Assembly: GCA_965112735.1 (NCBI GenBank)
Contig: OZ218961.1
Coordinates: forward strand, 434,001 to 498,000
DNA length: 64,000 nt
Reading direction: 5' to 3'
From: Phaeosaccion multiseriatum
Lineage: Eukaryota; Protista; Ochrophyta, other classes
Positions 706-53,535 of the stretch are shown piece by piece; positions within the stretch are counted from its first letter, which is position 1; each line of letters begins with the position of its first letter. The notes beneath the pieces are model-generated. The model was not told the DNA's origin and did no database searches. It saw only the letters and a list, made by a program, of their open reading frames with translations. The translations under genes were made by a program, and so were the position numbers.

Positions 706-3299
706 CTATTTGGAGGCCTCCAGCGCCTCCTTGGCGGCTCGAGCAATGTCCTCCCTCGGAATAGGCGTCCCGGTGACCTCCTTGTAGGCAGTCACCTCCC
801 CGGCTGTGTTGACAACGAGATACCCGCCCAGGGTTAGTCCGTCCCCCTTCATGTTCCCCTCGATGTTATTGTCCTTCAGGCGTTTGCCGAGGGCGGAGAA
901 TTCTCGGTAAATCTTGATGGGGTTCCTGTGCACAGGTAGGCAGATAGGTAGGCAGATGGGTAGGTACATGGGTACGTACGTACGTAGGTAAGTCGGTAGG
1001 TGGGTAGGTAAGTAGGTAAGAAGGAGAAGGGAGGGAAGTGGGGTAGGTGGGGAGGTAAGGGGACGTAGGTAGGTAGGAGGAGGGAAGAAAGGAAGGAAGG
1101 TAGGCAAGGCAGTTACCAATAATACCCTGTCTTCCCCTTCTCTTATCCTACTCTACCCTGCCTTACCCTACCCTGCCCTATCCCACCCTACCCCACCCTC
1201 CCTACCCTACCCCCCCGGTGCACCTTACTCACCAGGAGGTGGGCATGAGGGAGAGCTTGTTGTCGCCAAGGGCCTCGTAGAACGACTTGTTTGTGTCTGG
1301 GGGGCAGGGCGGTGGAGGAATATGGGTGGTGTCGGAGGCATGTCGTACGGGTGCGCAGTCACATACTTACAGAGGCTTGTATTGGCACACACACACCCTT
1401 CCTCTGTCCCTCTTCCTCTGTCCGCTTGTATTGGCACACACACACTCTTCCTCTGTCCCTCTTCCTCTGTCCGCTTGTATTGGCACACACACACTCTTCC
1501 TCTGTCCCTCTTTCTCACCCTCTCTCTCCCCGTCTCTACCACCCTCTCTCTTGCCCTCCCTCCCCCCCTCTTACTCTCTCTCTCTCTCTCTGTGTGTGTG
1601 TGTATGCTCTGCATGCCTTTATCAGTGGCGGTTCTTACCGAGGAAGAAGCCGTCATTGTCGGCAAAGTATTTGTTCTCGAACTCCCCGACGCCGAGCTCC
1701 TCGTCGGTCTGGTATATAAATAAGATGGAGAGGAGGCATGGTTTTGGAGAGACAGAGGGGGTGGGACAAAATGATATACATAAACTATTCTATTCCCTAT
1801 CTGTATAAACAGATAGAGAGTGGATATATATACAGTGGGTATATAGACAGAGAGTGGATCGTGTGTAAAACAGGATGTGCGAGGCGGGGAGGGGGGTTCT
1901 TGGAGCGGTGATTGCAGAGGGTAAAGTATCATCTGTAGAACAGACCTACATGCACATGTACGCATACACATACACACACGCACATACGCACACACACACG
2001 CACGCACATACGCACACACATACACACACATACGGACACACACACATACGCACCAGGACTTTCCCCACGGGTGCCAGTTCCTTGACAACGCCGTACAGAT
2101 TGAGGCCCTCGAAGAGCCCTGGGGGATAGAGGAGGGGAGAGGAGAGTGGGGGGACAGGGGGGTTTGAGATGGAGCAGGGAGAGTGGGGAGAGAGAGAGGG
2201 AGAGAGACAGAGAGAGGCAGAAAGAGAAAGAGAGACAAAGAGAGAGAGAGAGAGGGAGGGACAAGAGAGAGAGTGGCAGTAGAGTGGGGTATATAGAACG
2301 GAGAACGAAGGTAGAGGGAGAGGGATGGAGAGGAAGAGAGAGGAGGGGGGTGGGGGCAGAGAGTGAGAGGCATACGAGTAGGCAAGTGCGAAGGCTGAGC
2401 GTGACTTGCGTGGAGAGATGTAAATCACGCCGCCTTATCATGCGCCTCATCTCCGGCCCTTCCTCGCTCAACTCTTTCTCTCTCTCTCCTTCTCTCTCTC
2501 TCTCTCCTCCCTCCCTCCTCTCTCTCGTCTTCTCCCTTCCTTGCTCATTCCCTCTCTGTGCTCTCCTCTGCTCTCACCCTCTTTTTTCATTTCCATGAAT
2601 TCCCGGGCTTCGTCCCTGATGAGAGAGAAGAAGAAAAAACGGAGACGGGGGTAGAGAGAAGGTCGTGGAGAGGCAGGCAGGGGGGGGCGTGGGAGAGCAG
2701 ACATTAGATTACACCAACAGTTAGCGTGCATAATTCATATGCAAGATGTTGTAGTGGAGCATCCCGGCTTCCACGGTGACCTTGCACTACTCCCAACACG
2801 ATCCAATGAGGCACGGGCACTACTTACGCCAACACTAAATGATGCTACTGCTCTTACCGGCACAGGGGTCATCCCGACCTCCGCACTGCGAAAACCACTG
2901 CGAGTAGATGGGGGGGGGGGGCGGGGAGGAGAGCATGCACGCGACAAGGGGGGCAGCTGTGAGAATAGGAGGGAGACAAGTGAACAAGGAAGGAGAGGGG
3001 GGGGTGTGAGAAGCCGTGAAGCAGTCCATCCGCTCTACCTTACCCGCAGGCTTCGACTCCCACAGGGAAGCTCCCAGCACAGTTTCGTCGGACTTGATGG
3101 CGCCGTTTGCCACAGGCCTTAGCACTGCCTCGGCCAGGAGAGTCTTTCCGTGTGATGAGATTTCCACCTTTGTCCCGGGCGGCGATGGGCTCGACGCCGC
3201 CATGGACGGGCAGGTTGAGAAGGCCTGCGACACCCCAACGAGGGCTAAGGTTCCCAGCAGCAGCAGCTTCCCTGCCCTTTGGGTGTGAACTTGCAGCAT
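706..3299 (-). CDS. SELENOU: Selenoprotein U / PRXL2-like (AhpC-TSA_2) thioredoxin-fold protein with Sec in a UxxC motif; probable plastid-targeting N-terminus
   Basis: Seven phase-consistent GT-AG exons: 3044-3299, 2858-2897, 2578-2615, 2054-2118, 1639-1708, 1233-1296, 706-925. The spliced protein reads LWESKPAVVFAVRRSG[TGA]PLCRDEA...LYGVVKE...LGVGEFENKYF...FYEALG...GNMKGDGLTLGGYLVV, matching the SelU/PRXL2A pattern RRxG(U/C)xLCRxEA. The N-terminus is LLLLGTLALVGVSQA-FS. Confidence 0.85.
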
Positions 3300-3443
3300 G
3301 ATTTGAGTGATTCAGCAAAAAAGAAAAAAGAAAAAAAGGAATGCCGTGGGCTGCCATCCGATGCCACTGTTTTGAATCCGATCATCGATCCTCTTGTCAA
3401 GCACCCATCTATCTCAAGCTTACTCCTTGGTCTGCTCGCCACG
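3300..3443. promoter_or_regulatory. Probable compact bidirectional promoter/5'UTR region
   Basis: Only 144 bp separate the divergent start codons at 3299 (-) and 3444 (+). Confidence 0.5.
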
Positions 3444-6400
3444 ATGCCGACTGTGTCGCTGGCGTCCGAAGGAAGCTGGGCGGAGGCCTTGGGAAAGGAT
3501 AGTGGCTCCCAACTCGCAGACCTCGCGTCCAAAGGCCACCGCGAAGGAGCGAGAGGGGCGCTACAGCTGTTGAAAGAGGCGACAAGGGTCTTGGAAGAGC
3601 GAGTTGCGAAGGCAGAGAGAGTCGCCGAAGGGGCAGAAGGAGGAGGAGGAAGAGGAGGAGGAGTCACAGCACCGGCGATGAAGAAAGAAGCAATAGAAAC
3701 AGGAAGGAGCTGCATAGTACCGGCTGTCCAGGTAAATCCTCACCAAGGGGGGGGAAGCGCCACTACACCACGCTTCTCCTTCCCTCCCTCTTGTGCCGTT
3801 TGTCTCACGTCTTGGCTCTCCCTCAGTGGGGCAAGACGATGTGTCGGGGCTCAAATTTCCGTGAAGAGATACCACGGCAACGGAAGAGCACGAGGCTATA
3901 CACTGCTTCTTCACTCTCTCTCTCTTCCCCTTTCTATGTCTCTATCTCTATCTACCACCACCTCTTTGGTGGCACCATCTCCTTCCTCACAGCAGCCCCT
4001 GCAACCCCTCGTGCTACCTCCCTGTGGCACTCTCGTAATGTCCTTATACACAGTGCATTCACCCTCGTGGCCGCTTCGACGTGACAATGAAGGAGTCAGG
4101 TATGGGAGAAGAGGGGGAGAGAGAAGGAGAGGTGTTTGGAATTGAAATTGGAGGAGGAAGGATGAGGTAGAGGGGGGGAGGAGGGGAGAGGGGAGAAGAG
4201 GAGAGGAGAGAAGAGGAGGGAGAAGGGGAAGGGAGAACAGAAGAGGAGGAGAAAAGGAGGAGAGAGGAGGAGAGACAAGGAGAGCAGAGGAGAGACGAAG
4301 AGAGAAAAGAGCGGACTCTACTGCTGCCCCCCCCACCCTCTCCCCTCTACCTTGTGACTCACATCAACCCCGTGCCCCCCCCCACTCCCTCTCCCCTTCC
4401 TTCCCCGGCCCCGCACAGGCATTGAGCTCGTCGGAAAGACGAGTGTCGCGACGACTTGGGCCAATGTGACACACGTCATCAGATTCGCCAAGCCCGACAA
4501 CTACGCCACCTCATCGGTGAGGGGATGGCAGTGGATGGTGCAAGGGGAAGGGGATGGACCTTGTTGCTCGTTGATCTCTCTCTCTCTCTCTCTCTCCTCC
4601 TCGCGATACTCGACAAAGAGAGGACCTAATGCACTCACTCTTGGGTGCTGACTTGGATCCGAATCTGTACTACACTCTTACGAGGCCCCCCTCCTTCCCC
4701 TCTCCATCACCCACTGGTCTACACCTCCTCCCCTCCGCCCGCCCTTTTGCTCGTCCGGCGCGGTCTCGGTCTTTATCCAACTGGCGACTATGCAGAAGGC
4801 CCCATCTGCTTACATGGTCGTTCTGGCGCTGCAGACCCCCGTCATGCTGGGCAAGAGCTCCAGCAAGGTGATCTGTCTGCAGCTGTCCGGCAAGTATGAA
4901 AAGGGTAAGGAGAACGCCACCCTCACCATCGCGGGGCCAGCTGGCGGTGGTACCGCAGTTGGTGATACATCAGCGGGAGGAGGAGGAGGAGAAGGGGCTG
5001 AGGTGTTGAAGGGCCTTCCCTTCGAAGTGTTCTCAGCGGCGGTGGGGAAGCTCTCAAGGAAGCGCATACACAGCCCAAGCAGCTCCGTATTTCTCACCAA
5101 GGACAGCAAGGTAAGATAGAAAGAAAGAGAGAGAGAGATCGAGAGAAAGAAGAGAGACTAGGAAAGAGAGAACACACACTCACAGATAGCGGAGACAAAG
5201 AGGGAGAGAGAACGTACATGCACAGGGAGAGAGAGAGAGCATCTTGTTTCCTCCTCCTCCTGTGCTGCTGTGCCTCTGCCTTCAGTTCTGCTTGACTGCC
5301 TGATTCATTGCCCGTACTGCTGTATCACCAACTGCTGTGGCTATCCCTTGGCCTATGCAAAGTGCTTCTCTTGACCCTTCCCTCTCCCCTTCCCTTTCAC
5401 CCCAACCCTCCCTCACTCCCTCTTTCCCTCCCTCCCTCCCTCTTTCCCTCCCTCCCTCCCTCCCTCCCTCCCTCCCTCCCTCCCTCCCTCCCTCCCTCCC
5501 TCCCTCCCTCCCTCCCTCCCTCCCTCCCTCCCTCCCTCCCTCCCTCCCTCCCTCCCTCCCTCCCTCCCTCCCTCCCTCCCTCCCTCCCTCCCTCCCTCCC
5601 TCCCTCTCTCCCTCTCTCCCTCGATCTCTCCCTCCCTCTCTCCCTCCCTCCCTCCCTCTCTCCCTCCCTCCCTCTCTCCCTCCCTCCCTCCCTCCCCCCC
5701 CCCCCCCCCGCCCCTCCATATCCCTCACACTCAGGACTTTGTTGGGTGTCATCACGGTGTGAACGAAGGCGCTCTTCTGCCCCTCAAGGTCGGCTTGCTC
5801 TTCTTCAAGCCCACTTTGTTCATCCCCAGAGCGGAACTCTCCTCTATACAGGTATGTGCCTGTCTCTCTCTTCTTCGCCCTGTCGTCCTATCCCTCTTTC
5901 TCTCTCTTTCTCCCTCTCTCTCTGTCTCTCTTTCTCCCTCCCTTTCTCCCTCTCTCTCTCCCTCTATCTCTCTCTCCCTTTCTCCCTCTCTCTCTCCCTC
6001 TATCTCTCTCTCCCTCTGTCTCTCTCTCTTTCTCTCTCTGTCTCCCTCTCTCTCACCTCTCTCTATCTGATGTGGTTCCCTCATCGTCCTCATTGCCCGG
6101 ATCCCCTTACATCCCATACACCCATACATCCCATCACACATACCCTATATATACCCTATACATATACCCTAATATAAACCCATACATACCCTATATATAC
6201 CCTCTGTAGGTCGGCAGGGGCGGCTGCGCACAAACCCGCTACGTGGACCTCCATGTCACCACATCAGAGGAGGGAGGGGGGGGGGAGGAAGATACCCTCA
6301 CCGAGTTCACCAACATCGACAGAGACCATGTGCCCGCCCTTCAGGTGAGTGCGGAGGACGAAGGAGGCAGGCAGGCAGTACGGAGAAGCACCACCCCCCC

Positions 6401-45737: not shown

Positions 45738-46847
45738 GGGAGCGTGTTGACTACGGCACCAACAACAGTTGCAGTAGTAGTACGCGAGCAGACTACGGCA
45801 CAAACAACAGTTGCAGTAGTGGCAGGAATATTGACTTTGGTACAAACAACAGTAGCTGTAGTAGTACGCGAGCAGACTTCGGCACAAACAACAGCAGTAG
45901 TAGCAGCAGGAATATTGACTTTGGTACAAACAACAGCAGTAGTAGTAGTAGGCATGTTGACTTTGGTACCAACAATAGCAGTAGTAGTACCAGAACCAGT
46001 GTGAGCCTCGGCAGCAACAGCAGTAGTAGAAGCAGCACCAAGGCCGCGCCCTCATACTTGGCGCCCTTGCCTCCTTCGACTTGGAGTCCAACTACCACTT
46101 CTACTGCCACCATCGCTGCCTCTCGGGTGTATGGGCGTGTGTATGGAGCACCAATGTCTTCTGATGCTGCTGCTCCTGCAGACAGTCCTCTTCAGACTAG
46201 GGAGATGGAAGCATCGCTCCTCTCTGGTGGCGCGGCGGAGAGAGAGAGAGAGATAGGAGAGAGTCCGCAGCCTCTTGTGGGTCGTCCTTTGCCGCTGGTT
46301 GTGGGGATAATGCGCCATTCCGTTCGCTTGGATGGGCGGCTTGAGCAGCTCGAGGAGGGGGAGAGAGGGCAGGAGCAGGGGCAGGAGGGGGCAGGGGATG
46401 AAGAGAGGGCACAGGCGCGGAGAGCGAAGAAGAAGGAGAAGAAGACAATGAAGAAGGAGAAGAGGGAGAAGCGTGGGGAAGGGGGGGGAAGGGAGCACAG
46501 TGGCGGAGAGGAGAAGCAGGGTTGCAGTAGGCGCGATGGGGAACGGCAGCAGCAGCATCAGCAGCAGGAGAAGGAGGAGGAGGGGGAGGAGGAGGAGGAG
46601 GAGGAGGAGGAGGAGGAGGAGGAGGAGGAGGAGGACGAGGATAGGGGAGGGGGGGAGGAGGAGGAGGAGGAGCAGCTGGAGTGCCTTCCTTCAGAGCTTC
46701 TTCTGCGCGAATTTCCCTGGCAAGACAGACACACGCGTCCCTACGACACACCCATCTGTGACTACACACTCCCGGCCGCGCAGGTGTGTGTGTGTGTGTG
46801 TGTGTGCCTTTGTTCTTGTTCTTGCGCTCAGCCCCTCTACTCTTTTT

Positions 46848-46878
<31 letters not shown>

Positions 46879-48950
46879 CCTTGCTCCCTTGCTCCCTTCC
46901 TTCCTTCCTTCCTTCCTTCCTTCCTCCCTTCCTCCCTTCCTTCCTTCCTTCCTTCCTTCCTTCCCTTCTCCTCCCTGTCGTAGCTCCCCCTCGCGTCTGT
47001 CTTCATAGGGCGGCCTTTCCCCTGTCTGCTCAATCATGTTCACCACTCGCTTACTCACCTACCCTCACCCCCCTCTTGCTCTTGACTCCCTATGTGTGTG
47101 TTTATCACCCTCAGGCCGCGGCCATCTCATCCAAGGACCACACCTTTGATGTGATCCTCTGTTCCCCCTTTCGCCGGTGCCTGCAAACAGCCGGAGTAGT
47201 GGCGGCACGGCTTGGCATATGGGAAGTTGTCGTACATCTTGGGCTCGGAGAGAGGATGGACAAGGTGAAACAGGACATGAGGGAGAGTCAGAGGCACATT
47301 CAGAGTCAGCGTCAGAGTCAGCAGGCGCGGTCAGCAACCCCACCAGCACCAGCACTAGTACCACCAGTACCACCAGCTCCAGCACCAGTTGGTGATACAG
47401 CAGCACTCCGTGGAGGTGAGCAGATGAGCTCCTCTGGTGGTGGTGGTGGTTGCATTGCTCGCATTAAGGAGGAGGAAGGGGGAGGGGGTGTGGGTGGCGG
47501 TCTCTCCAAGGCCAGGGAGGAGGCGAGACGTTGTAGCCGCGATTATAGCAGCAGTAGCAGAGGGGGTGGTGGTGGTGGTGGTGGAGGAGGAGGCCCAAGA
47601 AAGGCGGATGGCGAAGAAGGGGAGGAGAGCAGCAGCAGTGACGACGCGCCGTCGACCTCGCCCTTGGGTGAGGCCCCTCTTCCTCCCCTGCCTTGTTTTG
47701 CGTACGTGGGGGGGGGAGATATTGCAGAGATGGAGCGAGAGTTGAATAGTTACGCTCTCCATCTGGAACAAGACGAAGGCAAAGAACAAGAACAAGGAGG
47801 AGGAGGAGGAGGAGGAGGAGGAGGAGGAGAGGAAGGAGGCTCACAAGAAGGAGAAGGACAGTTAGCACCTACGGCGGCTGCGGATCGTCGTGGGGGGTCT
47901 GGGAGCGAAGTTGAGGAGGGGCGCAGCACCTCACAGGGGCGGAGGGAGCGGCGGCAGGAGAGGCCATTGCGAAACGACGACTCCTCCTCCTCCGGCGGAC
48001 CCCCCGGGGAAACAGCAGTGGCGTTTAGCAACCACAACATCAGCAGGTGGAGGCATACGGGCAGCAGGAAGCGCGTGCGCGTGCGAGAAGTGCGGGGGCA
48101 GCAGCCCGATGAAGGAGAGAGTGGCCCCGACGGAAAGCAACGCTACGTTGACCTCATCCGGGCTCTGGACAGCGGAGAGGAGTTCTTCGATTTGTTTGAG
48201 TCGGAGGAAGACGACGACGAAGAAGAGGAGGAGAGGGAGGAGGAGGAGGAGGAGGAGAAGATGTACCAGGAAGGGGATGGCACTTCACGCCGTGGTAGGT
48301 CCCCACGCGGGGGGCACAGCGCACCCCCTGGGAGCAGGCGGGAGCACAGAAGAGCCACTTTCAGTCAAATGCATGATGAGGAGGGTGGTGATGATGATGA
48401 TGATGATGATGATGATGGTGATGATGGGCTAAGGAGGAGCATGCGCAGGAGCCGAAGAGGGCAGAGTGAGCACTGTGCAGGGGACGTACTTTGGAGAGAG
48501 GAGCACTGTGGGACGCAGGATTTGCACCACAGCAACGGGACGACGGGGTACGCAGAGCACCAAGGCGAAGGTGTTGGTGGGGCACACAGAGAAGAGGAGG
48601 GGCATCACGGTCGAAGGAAGCGAGGAAGAGGAGGACAGCCACAGCGGCGGCAGGAAGAGGAGGAGGAGGAGGGTTTTCATCCGAAACAAGACGAGCAAGG
48701 CGGAGAAAGGAGAAAGGACGACCGTCATGGTCAGCGGCAGGGGCAAGAGCAGGAGCAGGGGCAGAGAAGAGCGAGGAGGACGCGCAGGAAGGTGTTGGTG
48801 ATCGGCCATGGGGACATGCTCGACGCTGCTGCCGACGGTTTCGCAGGGCAAGTAGTGTATGAGGCGGATTTCTGCGCTTGGGTGGTGTTAGACCTTACTA
48901 AGGGGGAGCTGGTGGACACCTACGGGGTACAAACCATGCCGCTGTTCTAG
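45512..48950 (+). CDS. Histidine phosphatase (phosphoglycerate mutase-like) superfamily protein with long low-complexity insertions
   Basis: Exons 45512-46783 and 47115-48950. Motifs: IMRHSVRLD, RPYDTP, CSPFRRCLQTA, GLGE, VLVIGHGD. Confidence 0.85.
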
Positions 48951-49753: not shown

Positions 49754-50047
49754 GTTTTTTTAATTTTTAATTTTAAAAAATTAAATTAAAAAAAACTAAC
49801 TATTAACAATGATAAATGATGCACGTTAACGCCAGCAGCGGGGGTACAGTTGACAGTTGGTGTTGTGAGCACACGTCGGTTTAAGTTCCCCCGTCCTAGA
49901 GCTGAGTGTGGATAGTAGATAGAGGTCCGTTCAGTTTCAGTTCATTTGACCCAAAATCGATACCGAATCGCAGTACGATATCAATCCAAGGACCAATCAC
50001 ATGCTTGTGCTGTGTGCGTGTGAACTATCCAAACTGCCACCGTAAAC

Positions 50048-50271
50048 ATATCCATCCATCCATCCATCCATGCATGCATCCATCCATCCATCCATCTATC
50101 CATCTATCCATCCATCCATCCATGCATCCATCCATCCACCCATCCATCCATGCATCCATCCATCCATCCATCCATCCATGCATCCATCCATCCATCCATC
50201 CATCCATCCATCCATCCATCCATCCATGCATGCATACATGCATCCATCCATGCATCCATGCATCCATCCAT
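50048..50271. repeat. (CATC/CATG)n tetranucleotide microsatellite
   Basis: Directly visible. Confidence 0.9.
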
Positions 50272-50584: not shown

Positions 50585-52128
50585 TCAATTTGGCACTCGA
50601 TCCTCAATCTGTACCGAAGCCAACGTCCATGACACCTTCCCCCAACTCACTCCTCCAGCCACTTGAAACTGATGTAACCCCTTTAGCGTCCGACCGACCT
50701 CCTGCCCAATGTGTAGGTCCGGCATGGGCTCTCGAATGGGTGAGAGTTGATAACAAAACATGAGACTCAATCCGGAGGCGGAGTGGTGGAAGCCCTTGGG
50801 AAGTGTAACCGTCGCCTTCCCGTCCTCATCCAGCACACAGTTCCCATGCCACGCACGCGCTACACCCGTTCCTGAAGACGAATATCATCCCAAGGGGGAA
50901 GGAAGGAAGGAGGGGGGGAGGGACGGGGGGAGGGAGGAAGGGGGGGGAGGGAGAGAGGGAGAGAGGGAGGGAGAGAGGGAGGGAGCGAGGAGGGAGGGAG
51001 GAGAAGGAGGGATGGAGGAGGGTTCAGTGCCAGGTGCCGGGGGCCACGGTCAGGGGCCAGGGTCAGGGACGGAGAAAGCTGATAGTCGATAGAGAAAAGT
51101 CGACTGACGATACTAGTTCGTAGTCGAAATATGAAAGTCAGTGGACATACAGATAACAGTGGATAATAGCCGCTAGTTAAGCCTCCTTCCTCTCTACCTG
51201 CGGGGTCTTGGGACTTTATAACTCCACACATGTCCGCAGCATCGATTTTCAGTATGTAACGTTGGGTAAAGAATACACTAAACAGCACGAGCATGGAACA
51301 CATGTAGATCAAAAGAAGGACCTGTATAGAGGCATATGGGGACAGGGGGAGGGAGAGAGAGGGTAAGAGAGGCGGAGGGAGGGAGGGAGGGAGGGAGGGA
51401 AGGAGGGAGGGAAGGAGCGAGAGAGAGAAAGGGAGTGATGGGTGGGGGAAAGGTGGGGGGAAAGGGCAGCGGAGGGGAGCTTCACTTGTCAGTTTCAGTC
51501 TCCGCTTTCAGGGCACAAGCCCACTTCCTTACTTTTCGCCTCCTCCTCTTCCTCCCTTCTCCATCCTCTGCCATCTTCCCAACCCCACCCACCCACTCAT
51601 TGACATACTAAGCCCACACATCCACTGCCATCCGCCCACCTTTACAAAGTCCGGGCTGCCACATGACGGACCGCGAAGGTAAGCCATCAGCGATTGGGTA
51701 AAGATGAGCCCAAACTGGACCAGCTGACAAGAGGTGAGGTAAGGAGACCACCACGCGTGTATTCCCATGGAGGTGAGGATGTAGTGCGAATACATGAGGG
51801 CGTGGGCGATGCAGTTGGTGAGGATGGGGAGGAAGATGTCTCCATTAAAGTCAAAGGGCAGGAAGCTGCCCACCACGACGGTGATGGAGGAGTGGTGAAA
51901 CAGGTGCAGGAAGGTAACCTTTTGTGTTGTGTTCCGGGGGTTTGGGTGCATGGCAGTGGATGGGAGGTTGGTGGATGGATGGCAGTGGATGGGGAGGGAG
52001 AGGAGAGGCGGAGGGGTGGAGAGGCACACACACGGGCGGGGAGGGGGAGGAGAGACAGGGACTTAGTTAGTTACTTGTTGTTACACACAGAAAGAGAGAC
52101 AACGACGGAGTGAGAGAGAGCAAGAAGA

Positions 52129-52159
<31 letters not shown>

Positions 52160-52509
52160 CAAGAGAGGTAGAGAGGCGGAGAGGGAGAGAGAACATGAGA
52201 GAGGGAGAGAGATGGAGGGGGAGAGGACGTAAAAGAAGGGAGCTGACAAATGAAAAGCTCTTGAGAGGAGGGGTAAGTGCTGTCGGAGCCCCACTGCTTA
52301 GAGCAGAGGGGGGAGTATTGCGGGGCAGGTGAAGGAGGGGAGGGAGGAAGAAGGGAGAGAGAAGAGGGGAAAGGGAGGGTGCGAAGGGAGGGTGAAGAGA
52401 GGGCGTGAAGGGGCAGTGAAGGGAGAGAAGGTGAAGGGAGGGTGAACGGAGGGTGAAGCGATAGTGAAGTGAAGTGAAGTGAAGTGAAGTGAAGTGAACC
52501 CCCCCCCCC

Positions 52510-52550
<41 letters not shown>

Positions 52551-53535
52551 CCAAGCTCTTGCTGCATCGCCCACTCCTCGCTCGTACCTGACGAAAGGAG
52601 AAGCGCAGAAGGAAGAAGAAGGTGTCGCCGAACTCCAGCCACTTTTGGATGTAAAACAGCGCAATCAGCCTGGCCACGGCCTGCCCCAGGGGGTCCGTCC
52701 GAAGAGTGTTGCACATAAAGTTGGTGCTGTCCGCGTTCAGAACCTCCTCTGCGTGTTGTAAAAACTGCACCCGCTCCTCCGACATCAAGAAACACGCATC
52801 ATCCTGCTCCCCTCCCGAAACTGCTCCTCCTCCTCCCGCTCCTACGCAGAAACCACTACCACTATCACCACTGTACCCTCCCATCCCTCCTCCTCCTCCT
52901 CCTCCTCCTCCTCCTCCTCTTCTCAGAAATCCTGCCTCTTGGAGTGAGTGCCTCTCCTTTATCTCTTGCAGCTTGTAACGTACGAGTCCCACCGCTATGT
53001 AAAGGCTCATTGCCACGTGGAGGAGGTTGTATAGCAGCATGGGTACCTTTAGCGGGAAGGGGGGGCGGGAACCAAGCCACCGAGGGAAAGAGAGGGCACA
53101 CAGAAATGAGGACGAGTAGGCGAGATAGTGACTAGTGAGAAGAGGGAGAAAGAGAAAGATGGGGGGGGGGTCAGGGAGAAGAGAAGAGAACGGGACAGAG
53201 AGAGAGAGAGAGAGAGAGAGAGACGCACACACACGCACAACACACAGAGAGAGAGAGAGAGATAGCAGACAGCCTCCAAGGGATGCAACTGCAGGGTACA
53301 CACTGACCTTGACGTTGTAAGCGCTCCCTCTCCTCCGCATCTTGACGTACAGGGCCCCGGCACAGAGCACGTACAAGACATTGCCCACCACCAGCAGGGT
53401 CTCCTCGACGTCCATATCGAACAGGTCGAGAAGCCATGTCGAGGGCTGGAGGCCGTCCTGGACGCGCACATGGTAGGAGGCGATGGAGGCCTCGTACGAG
53501 CTGATGGCGCGGCGGTAGAAGGGCACCAGGACCAT
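50585..53535 (-). CDS. ELO/GNS1-SUR4 fatty-acid elongase with an extra C-terminal beta-rich domain
   Basis: Exons 53308-53535, 52588-53046, 51640-51918, 51198-51321 and 50585-50871 are in phase. ELO motifs: LYN, KWLEFGDTFF, VTFLHLFHH, NCIAHALMYSHY, LTSCQLVQF, LF.FF..RY. Confidence 0.9.

Follow-up and report, generated by a model that had tools for sequence, protein, structure and literature searches.

The last coding exon of a fatty-acid elongase gene in the ochrophyte alga Phaeosaccion multiseriatum encodes a beta-sandwich domain related to the tips of bacterial and phage fibres. The gene lies on the minus strand of a 64,000-nucleotide stretch of DNA (hereafter the window; NCBI GenBank assembly GCA_965112735.1, contig OZ218961.1, positions 434,001 to 498,000), within which all coordinates below are counted. 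An earlier annotation made from the letters of this stretch, the sequence-only reading, had proposed an ELO elongase fused to a bacterial/phage tail-fibre-type C-terminal domain, perhaps horizontally acquired. We consider it probable, taking the reading as a whole, that the domain is encoded by a genuine last exon, that it is a beta-sandwich related to fibre tips, that it defines an old ELO subfamily, that its capture was ancient, and that it acts as a protein-protein module.

The gene model comprises five exons, totalling 1377 nt or 458 codons, and was read from the sequence and then checked for colinearity with orthologues. Exon 1 (53535-53308, minus strand, as are all features of the gene; 76 codons) starts with the ATG at 53535-53533 and ends in the donor AAG|gtcagt; in a tblastn search against the window, residues 1-76 of the Chrysoparadoxa orthologue P0158 aligned to 53532-53311, in this exon. 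Exon 2 (53046-52588; 153 codons) covers positions 64-113 of the Pfam ELO profile and holds the KxxExxDT box; its acceptor, picked by colinearity with the orthologues, is the least certain boundary of the gene. Exon 3 (51918-51640; 93 codons) carries the HxxHH, NxxxHxxMYxHY and TxxQxxQ boxes, and exon 4 (51321-51198) encodes the last transmembrane helix and a linker, including the family-invariant motif MCGVIKS (51231-51211), before ending on the first base of a split glycine codon. After intron 4 (51197-50872; 326 nt), exon 5 (50871-50585) encodes the beta domain and the stop codon TGA (50587-50585). The core of the beta-sandwich spans exon-5 residues 6-87 (50854-50609), as delimited by the phmmer ranges, a domain alignment (A1), hhalign, the AlphaFold2 model and the fold matches, and a conserved C-terminal end, EDRVPN plus stop (50605-50585), sits in the place of the usual di-lysine tail. 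The GC content at third codon positions declines along the gene (exon 1, 0.89; exon 3, 0.76; exon 5, 0.59; small samples), and the overall GC content of exon 4 is only 44%.

On its motifs and profile matches, the host gene is an ELO (GNS1/SUR4, ELOVL-type) condensing enzyme, which would be expected to condense acyl-CoA with malonyl-CoA. Pfam PF01151 matched exon 3 with 75 bits and the open reading frame (ORF) of exons 1-2 with 46 bits, for a gathering cut-off of 27, and exon 4 matched the end of the profile (positions 214-237) below that cut-off. The four boxes described for ELO enzymes are KxxExxDT, HxxHH, NxxxHxxMYxYY and TxxQxxQ, and a glutamine at position -5 of the His box is a signature of the polyunsaturated fatty acid type (PMC8073319). 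All four are present, as KWLEFGDT in exon 2 and as HLFHH, NCIAHALMYSHY and TSCQLVQ in exon 3, and the HLFHH box carries the glutamine at -5. A word-index protein search with the exon 1-2 ORF (region 157-316) gave no match, a failure for which a glycine-rich insert is probably the cause. This insert of ~75 residues (~52965-52740) is in frame in exon 2, in the loop before the KxxExxDT box; it is absent in Chrysoparadoxa and Phaeothamnion, and glycine-rich inserts occupy the same place in brown algae, such as Ectocarpus (P0164).

The architecture of the whole protein was modelled on the Phaeothamnion confervicola orthologue P0001 (CAM9439819.1; 382 residues, ELO 47-268, domain 293-382). Its AlphaFold2 model, with a predicted local distance difference test score (pLDDT) of 90, displays seven transmembrane helices and an N-terminal helix, a low-confidence linker (275-292) and the beta domain (296-375), and its best match in the PDB is human ELOVL7 (6Y7F; template modelling (TM) score 0.78 by target, 31% identity). 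In the linker, G278, V279 and K281 are invariant or nearly so (alignment A2). The window protein thus has the same catalytic motifs as ELOVL/ELO enzymes (PF01151; ELOVL7 6Y7F; ELOVL4), and the seven-helix fold is seen in the model of its orthologue. What sets the subfamily apart from these enzymes is a beta-sandwich of ~80 residues placed after the last helix and before the C-terminal tail, together with the invariant linker motif GV(I/V)K. Since the catalytic boxes are all in exons 2-3, the added domain would not be needed for the chemistry as such.

The similarity of the exon-5 product to its relatives is far more than chance. A phmmer search of 1.84 billion protein representatives returned 706 proteins at E<=1e-3, mostly as C-terminal domains of fibre-like bacterial "hypothetical" proteins. 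The best match was P0001 (E 2.8e-22, 56% identity), and bacterial members reached E 6e-9. If the ELO fusions and two repeat artefacts are set aside, the relatives are ~100-1100 residues long and carry the match at a median distance of 46 residues from the C-terminus. The two artefacts, P0002 (SpaA repeats and an LPXTG anchor) and P0005 (adhesin-like repeats), were rejected as homologues, their scores being sums of many weak repeat matches. All carriers that we looked up are annotated as hypothetical proteins, and come from metagenome-assembled genomes of Gemmatimonadota, Thermoanaerobaculia (Acidobacteriota), Deltaproteobacteria and Planctomycetota, and from a Bacteroidota plasmid, the last being Aureispira anguillae WP_264793648.1 (35% identity over 81 residues). 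A word-index search with the domain part of P0001 matched only P0001 itself and one other protein.

Profile-profile comparison sharpened this relationship. Aligned by hhalign, 70 eukaryotic ELO tails and 60 bacterial domains matched with a probability of 99.9% and E 2.4e-34 over 82 columns, from the E/D-P that follows GVIKS to VSW.V. The core positions of alignment A1 are all present in exon 5 (G9, L13, D14, G17, P24, F27, Y40, L42, P50, L52, E57, F68, G72, G73, S80 and W81). Bacterial and ELO versions have in common the core G..LD..G.A.V.LP..F, YQLTP.G, P.LH, E, F.(I/V)AGG and VSW, and fibre-like proteins of Aureispira (WP_264793648.1), Gemmatimonadota (MBA2669528.1) and Planctomycetota (MHC4405356.1) show 35-52% pairwise identity with the domain. 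The match is confined to the 82 core columns: the flanks of the bacterial versions (...VESPD before the core, VTGIRxDxYA...ERGxY after it) are absent from the eukaryotic members, where the core is preceded instead by the GV(I/V)K linker and followed by a short tail. The bacterial motif that the sequence-only reading had cited is real, being the consensus of 40 bacterial domains, of which the Aureispira protein is an example, and prokaryotic homologues number in the hundreds, to which phage tail proteins must be added.

The bacterial carriers look like surface fibres. They have glycine-rich or repeat shafts that match PHROG tail-fibre families, and in two of them a signal peptide could be recognized by eye. 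The bacterial version would thus be secreted, extracellular and borne on a fibre-like shaft, whereas the ELO version follows a seven-helix membrane enzyme and would face the cytosol. Three of the bacterial carriers are weakly similar at their N-terminus to the anchor of the Bdellovibrio MAT fibres (NF053851; PMC10769870). With 21-28 bits against a curated cut-off of 60, they were not accepted as members of that family; the likeness hints at a build of anchor, trimeric shaft and exchangeable tip, and has no bearing on the algal protein. Curated collections do not hold the domain. Exon 5 alone matched no Pfam family at E<=10 and gave no NCBIfam, usable PHROG or PDB sequence match, the PDB profile search included. 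Among the Pfam families searched was Peptidase_S74, the intramolecular chaperone, and no Pfam family was found in the exon (E<=10) or in nine bacterial carriers (E<=0.01; E<=1 for Aureispira). A feature search of the ESM Atlas with exon 5 gave weak leads at 0.76 only.

The link to phages passes through these bacterial members. A tblastn search of phages with exon 5 gave no match. When the Aureispira domain was used as the query, tblastn retrieved gp19 of the Arthrobacter phages Mufasa8 and Sonali, annotated as a minor tail protein (Mufasa8: QGJ93469.1), and hypothetical proteins of the T4-like cyanophages S-CAM9, S-T4 and S-PRM1 that adjoin baseplate genes; two PHROGs of unknown function (17490 and 28536) also match the Aureispira domain. 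The phage members match via the bacterial ones at E 4e-9 to 8e-8. The phage tail proteins (Mufasa8 gp19, the cyanophage proteins and the PHROGs) belong to the same domain family through its bacterial members, their presumed role in the phage being host binding at the tail tip.

Structural comparison points in the same direction. The AlphaFold2 model of the exon-5 product, computed from alignment A1, is a six-stranded all-beta fold (pLDDT 89, predicted TM-score 0.79). Foldseek searches of the PDB gave E 0.05-0.4, most of the top rows being C-terminal domains of phage tailspikes and pyocin fibres. In an exhaustive VIA structural search, the C-terminal domain of the cyanophage Pam1 tailspike came first (Z 8.2, root-mean-square deviation (rmsd) 2.1 over 71 residues), and eight of the 12 best chains were C-terminal domains of tailspikes, tail fibres or R-type pyocin fibres. 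The top viral structural match in BFVD was the Mufasa8 minor tail protein (E 8e-4, TM-score 0.61), the same protein that the sequence search had found independently, and the structural matches in the ESM Atlas were bacterial and archaeal hypothetical proteins (TM-score 0.71-0.77). The solved fibres with C-terminal beta-sandwiches of like fold include those of Pam1 (7EEA), LKA1 gp49 (4RU4), phi297 gp61 (4RU5) and the K1 lyase (7W1C), to which K64-1 S2-4 (9K4A), the R2 pyocin (6CL6) and AP22 gp53 (4MTM) can be added. These domains share with the algal one the fold class and the position at the end of the chain, with Z 5.5-8.2 and rmsd 2.1-4.0 over 71-83 residues, values that can reflect the common beta-sandwich arrangement only, and they have no detectable sequence similarity to it. 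The "tail-fibre-type C-terminal domain" label is thus supported by sequence, through the bacterial intermediates, and by the modelled structure.

The position of the domain in the protein bears on its topology. Di-lysine signals work at the extreme C-terminus, COPI retrieval acts from the cytosolic side, and the C-terminus of ELOVL enzymes is cytosolic. A KKxx or KxKxx end is present in 57 of the 73 eukaryotic members with a complete domain, the tail lying at a median distance of 39 residues behind the domain. Because most members carry this signal after the domain and the ELOVL C-terminus is cytosolic, we infer that the domain is itself cytosolic, having been inserted after the last helix and ahead of the retrieval tail. 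In dinoflagellate-type members (P0197, P0204, P0207), a conserved cysteine-rich stretch (..P.CC....CC..) lies between the beta domain and KKxx.

While most members of the subfamily thus keep the C-terminal di-lysine of ELOVL/ELO enzymes, the window protein instead ends in DRVPN and has neither KKxx nor KxKxx, as the sequence-only reading had observed. The proteins of Phaeothamnion, Chrysoparadoxa and an MMETSP group likewise lack the di-lysine and have the same kind of end, -D(R/D)(R/K)(V/I)(A/P)(H/N), directly after the domain. In ELOVL4, the di-lysine is required for residence in the endoplasmic reticulum (ER) and for activity (PMC3966703). With the di-lysine absent from the lineage of the window protein, its ER residence must rest on something else.

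We propose that the domain entered the subfamily by a single early capture from a bacterium or phage. It sits after the last helix and ahead of the ER-retrieval tail, on a flexible linker of ~20 residues that includes the invariant GV(I/V)K, and would face the cytosol. There it would stand outside the catalytic machinery and serve as a protein-protein module, for self-association of the elongase or for docking a partner of the elongation complex; in the lineage studied here, the conserved -DRVP(N/H) end would have replaced the di-lysine, ER residence being ensured by other means. Fibre tips are trimeric binding modules. By analogy with them, we put forward self-association or partner docking as a tentative assignment, one that might well turn out otherwise. 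A bolder version, which we regard as rather doubtful, holds that the domain, captured once early or spread via endosymbioses, builds elongase oligomers or docks a specific partner and also took over ER retention through the -DRVP(N/H) end. If this were true, a desaturase, another subunit of the elongase complex or a membrane contact site would be candidate partners, and stramenopiles, dinoflagellates and diplonemids would possess a separate, channelled elongation route.

With the same architecture, the domain might instead bind a ligand, in a lectin-like manner or through a lipid or coenzyme A head-group, and select substrates or hand them over at the cytosolic mouth of the elongase. This is the main rival on the role of the domain. 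Several structural neighbours bind ligands, among them the foot of R-type pyocin fibres, the C-terminal domain of Discoidin I, the Helix pomatia agglutinin, CBM modules and GOLD domains, and the flexible linker would let the domain reach the entrance of the active site. However, we could not point to any binding-site residues, conservation between eukaryotes and bacteria seems to fall on positions of the structural core, few glycans are found in the cytosol, and the fold matches are too weak to carry function. We therefore judge a ligand-binding role unlikely.

To define how far the fusion extends, the full-length P0001 was used as a query. This search returned ~100 ELO proteins, most of 360-430 residues and covering 95-100% of the query; besides P0001, ~85 ELO proteins carry the domain. 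A hidden Markov model built from alignment A1 detected the domain in 90 eukaryotic sequences, almost all of them ELO proteins or fragments. The fusion is found in the close relative Chrysoparadoxa australica, in brown algae (Ectocarpus, Undaria, Pylaiella, Discosporangium), in eustigmatophytes (Nannochloropsis oceanica), in chrysophytes (Ochromonadaceae CCMP2298, Spumella), in dinoflagellates (Tripos fusus, Pelagodinium beii, Gymnodinium smaydae) and in diplonemids (Diplonema ambulator). Its distribution among database sequences indicates that the fusion is an old, widespread and unnamed ELO subfamily of stramenopiles, dinoflagellates and diplonemids, and not a quirk of this genome. Of the earlier proposal of a horizontally acquired domain on an ER elongase, the fusion and the homology thus stand, while the fusion proves not to be peculiar to this alga or to ochrophytes. 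The ELO matches without the domain are all of 307 residues or fewer, and most are apparently fragments. Only P0247 (307 residues, JGI/Logan) seems truly domain-less: its GVIKS leads directly into a short KxKxx tail, without a beta domain, and it may represent the pre-fusion state or a secondary loss.

In a tree of the domain, built on 88 columns, poorly resolved and unrooted, the nearest relatives of the window domain are those of Chrysoparadoxa and Phaeothamnion. A single eukaryotic clade was not rejected by the approximately unbiased (AU) test, the constrained tree having the better likelihood (p-AU 0.94). The split of diplonemid-like sequences from the remaining eukaryotic ones in a free "quick" tree, which would imply two origins, was not accepted, the constrained single-clade tree being better. 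Transfer of the domain from bacteria or phages into a eukaryote is likely, and would be ancient, as suggested by these comparisons. This direction is the parsimonious one, because the prokaryotic domain occurs in many divergent clusters and architectures in at least five phyla, as opposed to a single eukaryotic architecture.

The reverse, an origin of the domain in the eukaryotic ELO subfamily followed by its capture by bacteria and phages, would be compatible with the unrooted domain tree and with the age and breadth of the eukaryotic family. But the bacterial domain is distributed over hundreds of clusters at 50% identity, in those five or more phyla and also in phages, its versions have many N-terminal architectures and extra conserved flanks, and every carrier identified here as eukaryotic is an ELO fusion. 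We thus consider reverse transfer highly improbable.

A splice junction lies in the linker just ahead of the domain core, and we assessed its reality by comparison. The in-frame splice put forward in the sequence-only reading (GCA G|GA ACG) conforms to a GT-AG intron in position, phase and frame: exon 4 ends in ...CCC GCA G at 51198, the donor GT occupies 51197-51196, and the acceptor AG (50873-50872) is preceded by a long pyrimidine (CT-rich) tract. The split codon G|GA encodes glycine, and the frame then yields the 94 residues originally read plus TGA, or 95 residues with the glycine. Exon 5 cannot be a small gene of its own: its frame contains no ATG and is closed by a stop four codons before the acceptor. 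Read on in frame from exon 4, intron 4 has no stop, and translation would continue for 113 codons, to a stop at 50860-50862; intron retention would give a low-complexity tail rich in proline, serine and leucine rather than an early stop, a reading that is not conserved in relatives.

Orthologues read through the junction. In the tblastn search with Chrysoparadoxa P0158, residues 243-290 fell in exon 4 and residues 290-379 in exon 5, G290 corresponding to the split codon; the alignment is otherwise without gap or overlap at the proposed splice. At the Phaeothamnion locus (L002), a single exon (3239-3541) encodes residues 245-345, a stretch that runs from the last transmembrane helix through the linker and takes in two thirds of the domain. 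P0003, encoded on a eukaryotic contig (L003) of a JGI metagenome, has a single exon (~2997-3249; ORF call from 3001) that reads IDAADTCGVIKS directly into WHGN..., with one intron between the seventh transmembrane helix and the linker and one inside the domain. Finally, four independent MMETSP transcriptome contigs, each ~1.5 kb long, encode P0159 as an uninterrupted fused ORF of 390 codons, and the C-terminus of this protein, -DRIAH, resembles the end of the window protein. The position of the stop codon behind the domain is conserved among orthologues. The junction, which the sequence-only reading had left to be confirmed from transcripts, is thus supported as genuine by the single-exon orthologues, the MMETSP transcript contigs and the seamless Chrysoparadoxa alignment.

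The positions of the 3' introns differ in all three species: in the linker in the window, inside the domain in Phaeothamnion, and before the linker and inside the domain in the metagenomic relative. Neither Phaeothamnion nor the metagenomic relative has an intron where the window has intron 4. Because its relatives have no intron at that point, intron 4 is, on this comparative evidence, lineage-specific and not the scar of the fusion; the bacterial homology, moreover, begins upstream of the splice. A recent horizontal acquisition confined to this alga or its near relatives, at an insertion point now marked by intron 4, is therefore extremely unlikely. The intron does sit in the linker just before the domain core, and GC at third positions does fall from exon 1 to exon 5. 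Nevertheless, the same fusion occurs in brown algae, eustigmatophytes, chrysophytes, dinoflagellates and a diplonemid, the relatives have their introns elsewhere, and the homology starts at the E/D-P after GVIKS. That exon 5 is an artefact of the gene model, lying outside the ELO mRNA as an unrelated fragment, a pseudo-exon or bacterial contamination, is hardly credible: although the open frame of intron 4 makes an unspliced alternative product conceivable, exon 5 has no start codon and a stop just upstream in its own frame, its acceptor is strong and in the correct phase, it is colinear with orthologues to the residue and down to the conserved stop, and the sequence on either side of it in the same contig includes introns and eukaryotic repeats.

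Several observations temper the overall interpretation. Compared directly, the algal exon and phage proteins match only weakly (BLASTP E 0.003 over 20 residues; hhalign probability 86%), the phage link being mostly transitive through bacterial intermediates, with structural matches in addition. These structural matches are themselves middling (Z 5-8; Foldseek E 0.05-0.4 against the PDB), and beta-sandwiches are common. The fold was modelled from the exon-5 product by itself and the topology from the orthologue P0001, and the invariant GV(I/V)K linker falls in a part of the AlphaFold2 model that has low confidence. The tree, short, unrooted and of 88 columns, leaves the direction and the date of transfer to inference, and oligomerisation and partner binding are proposed by analogy. 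Finally, four sequencing runs of one study contain this stretch and none is on record as RNA, so that the junction rests on comparison.

The surroundings of the gene are rich in simple sequence. A long microsatellite of the (TGGA/TGCA)n type (50030-50270) lies just downstream of the stop codon, and simple repeats of the CT, CA and GGA types occur in the introns and flanks (52120-52540 and 53180-53290). The neighbouring long ORF (46473-48950, plus strand) is convergent with the ELO gene. It matches the histidine phosphatase superfamily (PF00300) with 28.8 bits over residues 215-283, and the match is embedded in very low-complexity sequence rich in glycine, glutamate and arginine.

The fusion proteins are not new sequences: public databases already list them under "unnamed protein product", "conserved unknown protein" or ELO. 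No description of a fusion between ELO and a beta domain was found in the searchable lipid literature, and in a 2026 review of fatty-acid metabolism in stramenopiles, ELOs are mentioned 51 times and the word "C-terminal" does not occur. The domain itself is covered by no Pfam or NCBIfam model. The searches reported here define a large unnamed family of bacterial and phage domains (>700 clusters at 50% identity), which merits its own profile.

The chain length of fatty acids is set by ELO/ELOVL enzymes, and this includes the long-chain omega-3 acids, which are a motive for studying and engineering stramenopile algae. One entire subfamily of these enzymes, with members in groups as far apart as brown algae, Nannochloropsis, dinoflagellates and diplonemids, carries an extra folded domain, probably on the cytosolic side. 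The fusion provides a testable case in which the fold of a prokaryotic or phage adhesin tip may have been re-used inside the eukaryotic cell on a membrane enzyme, and it offers a handle on the organisation of elongases, namely their oligomeric state, their choice of partners and their retention in the ER.

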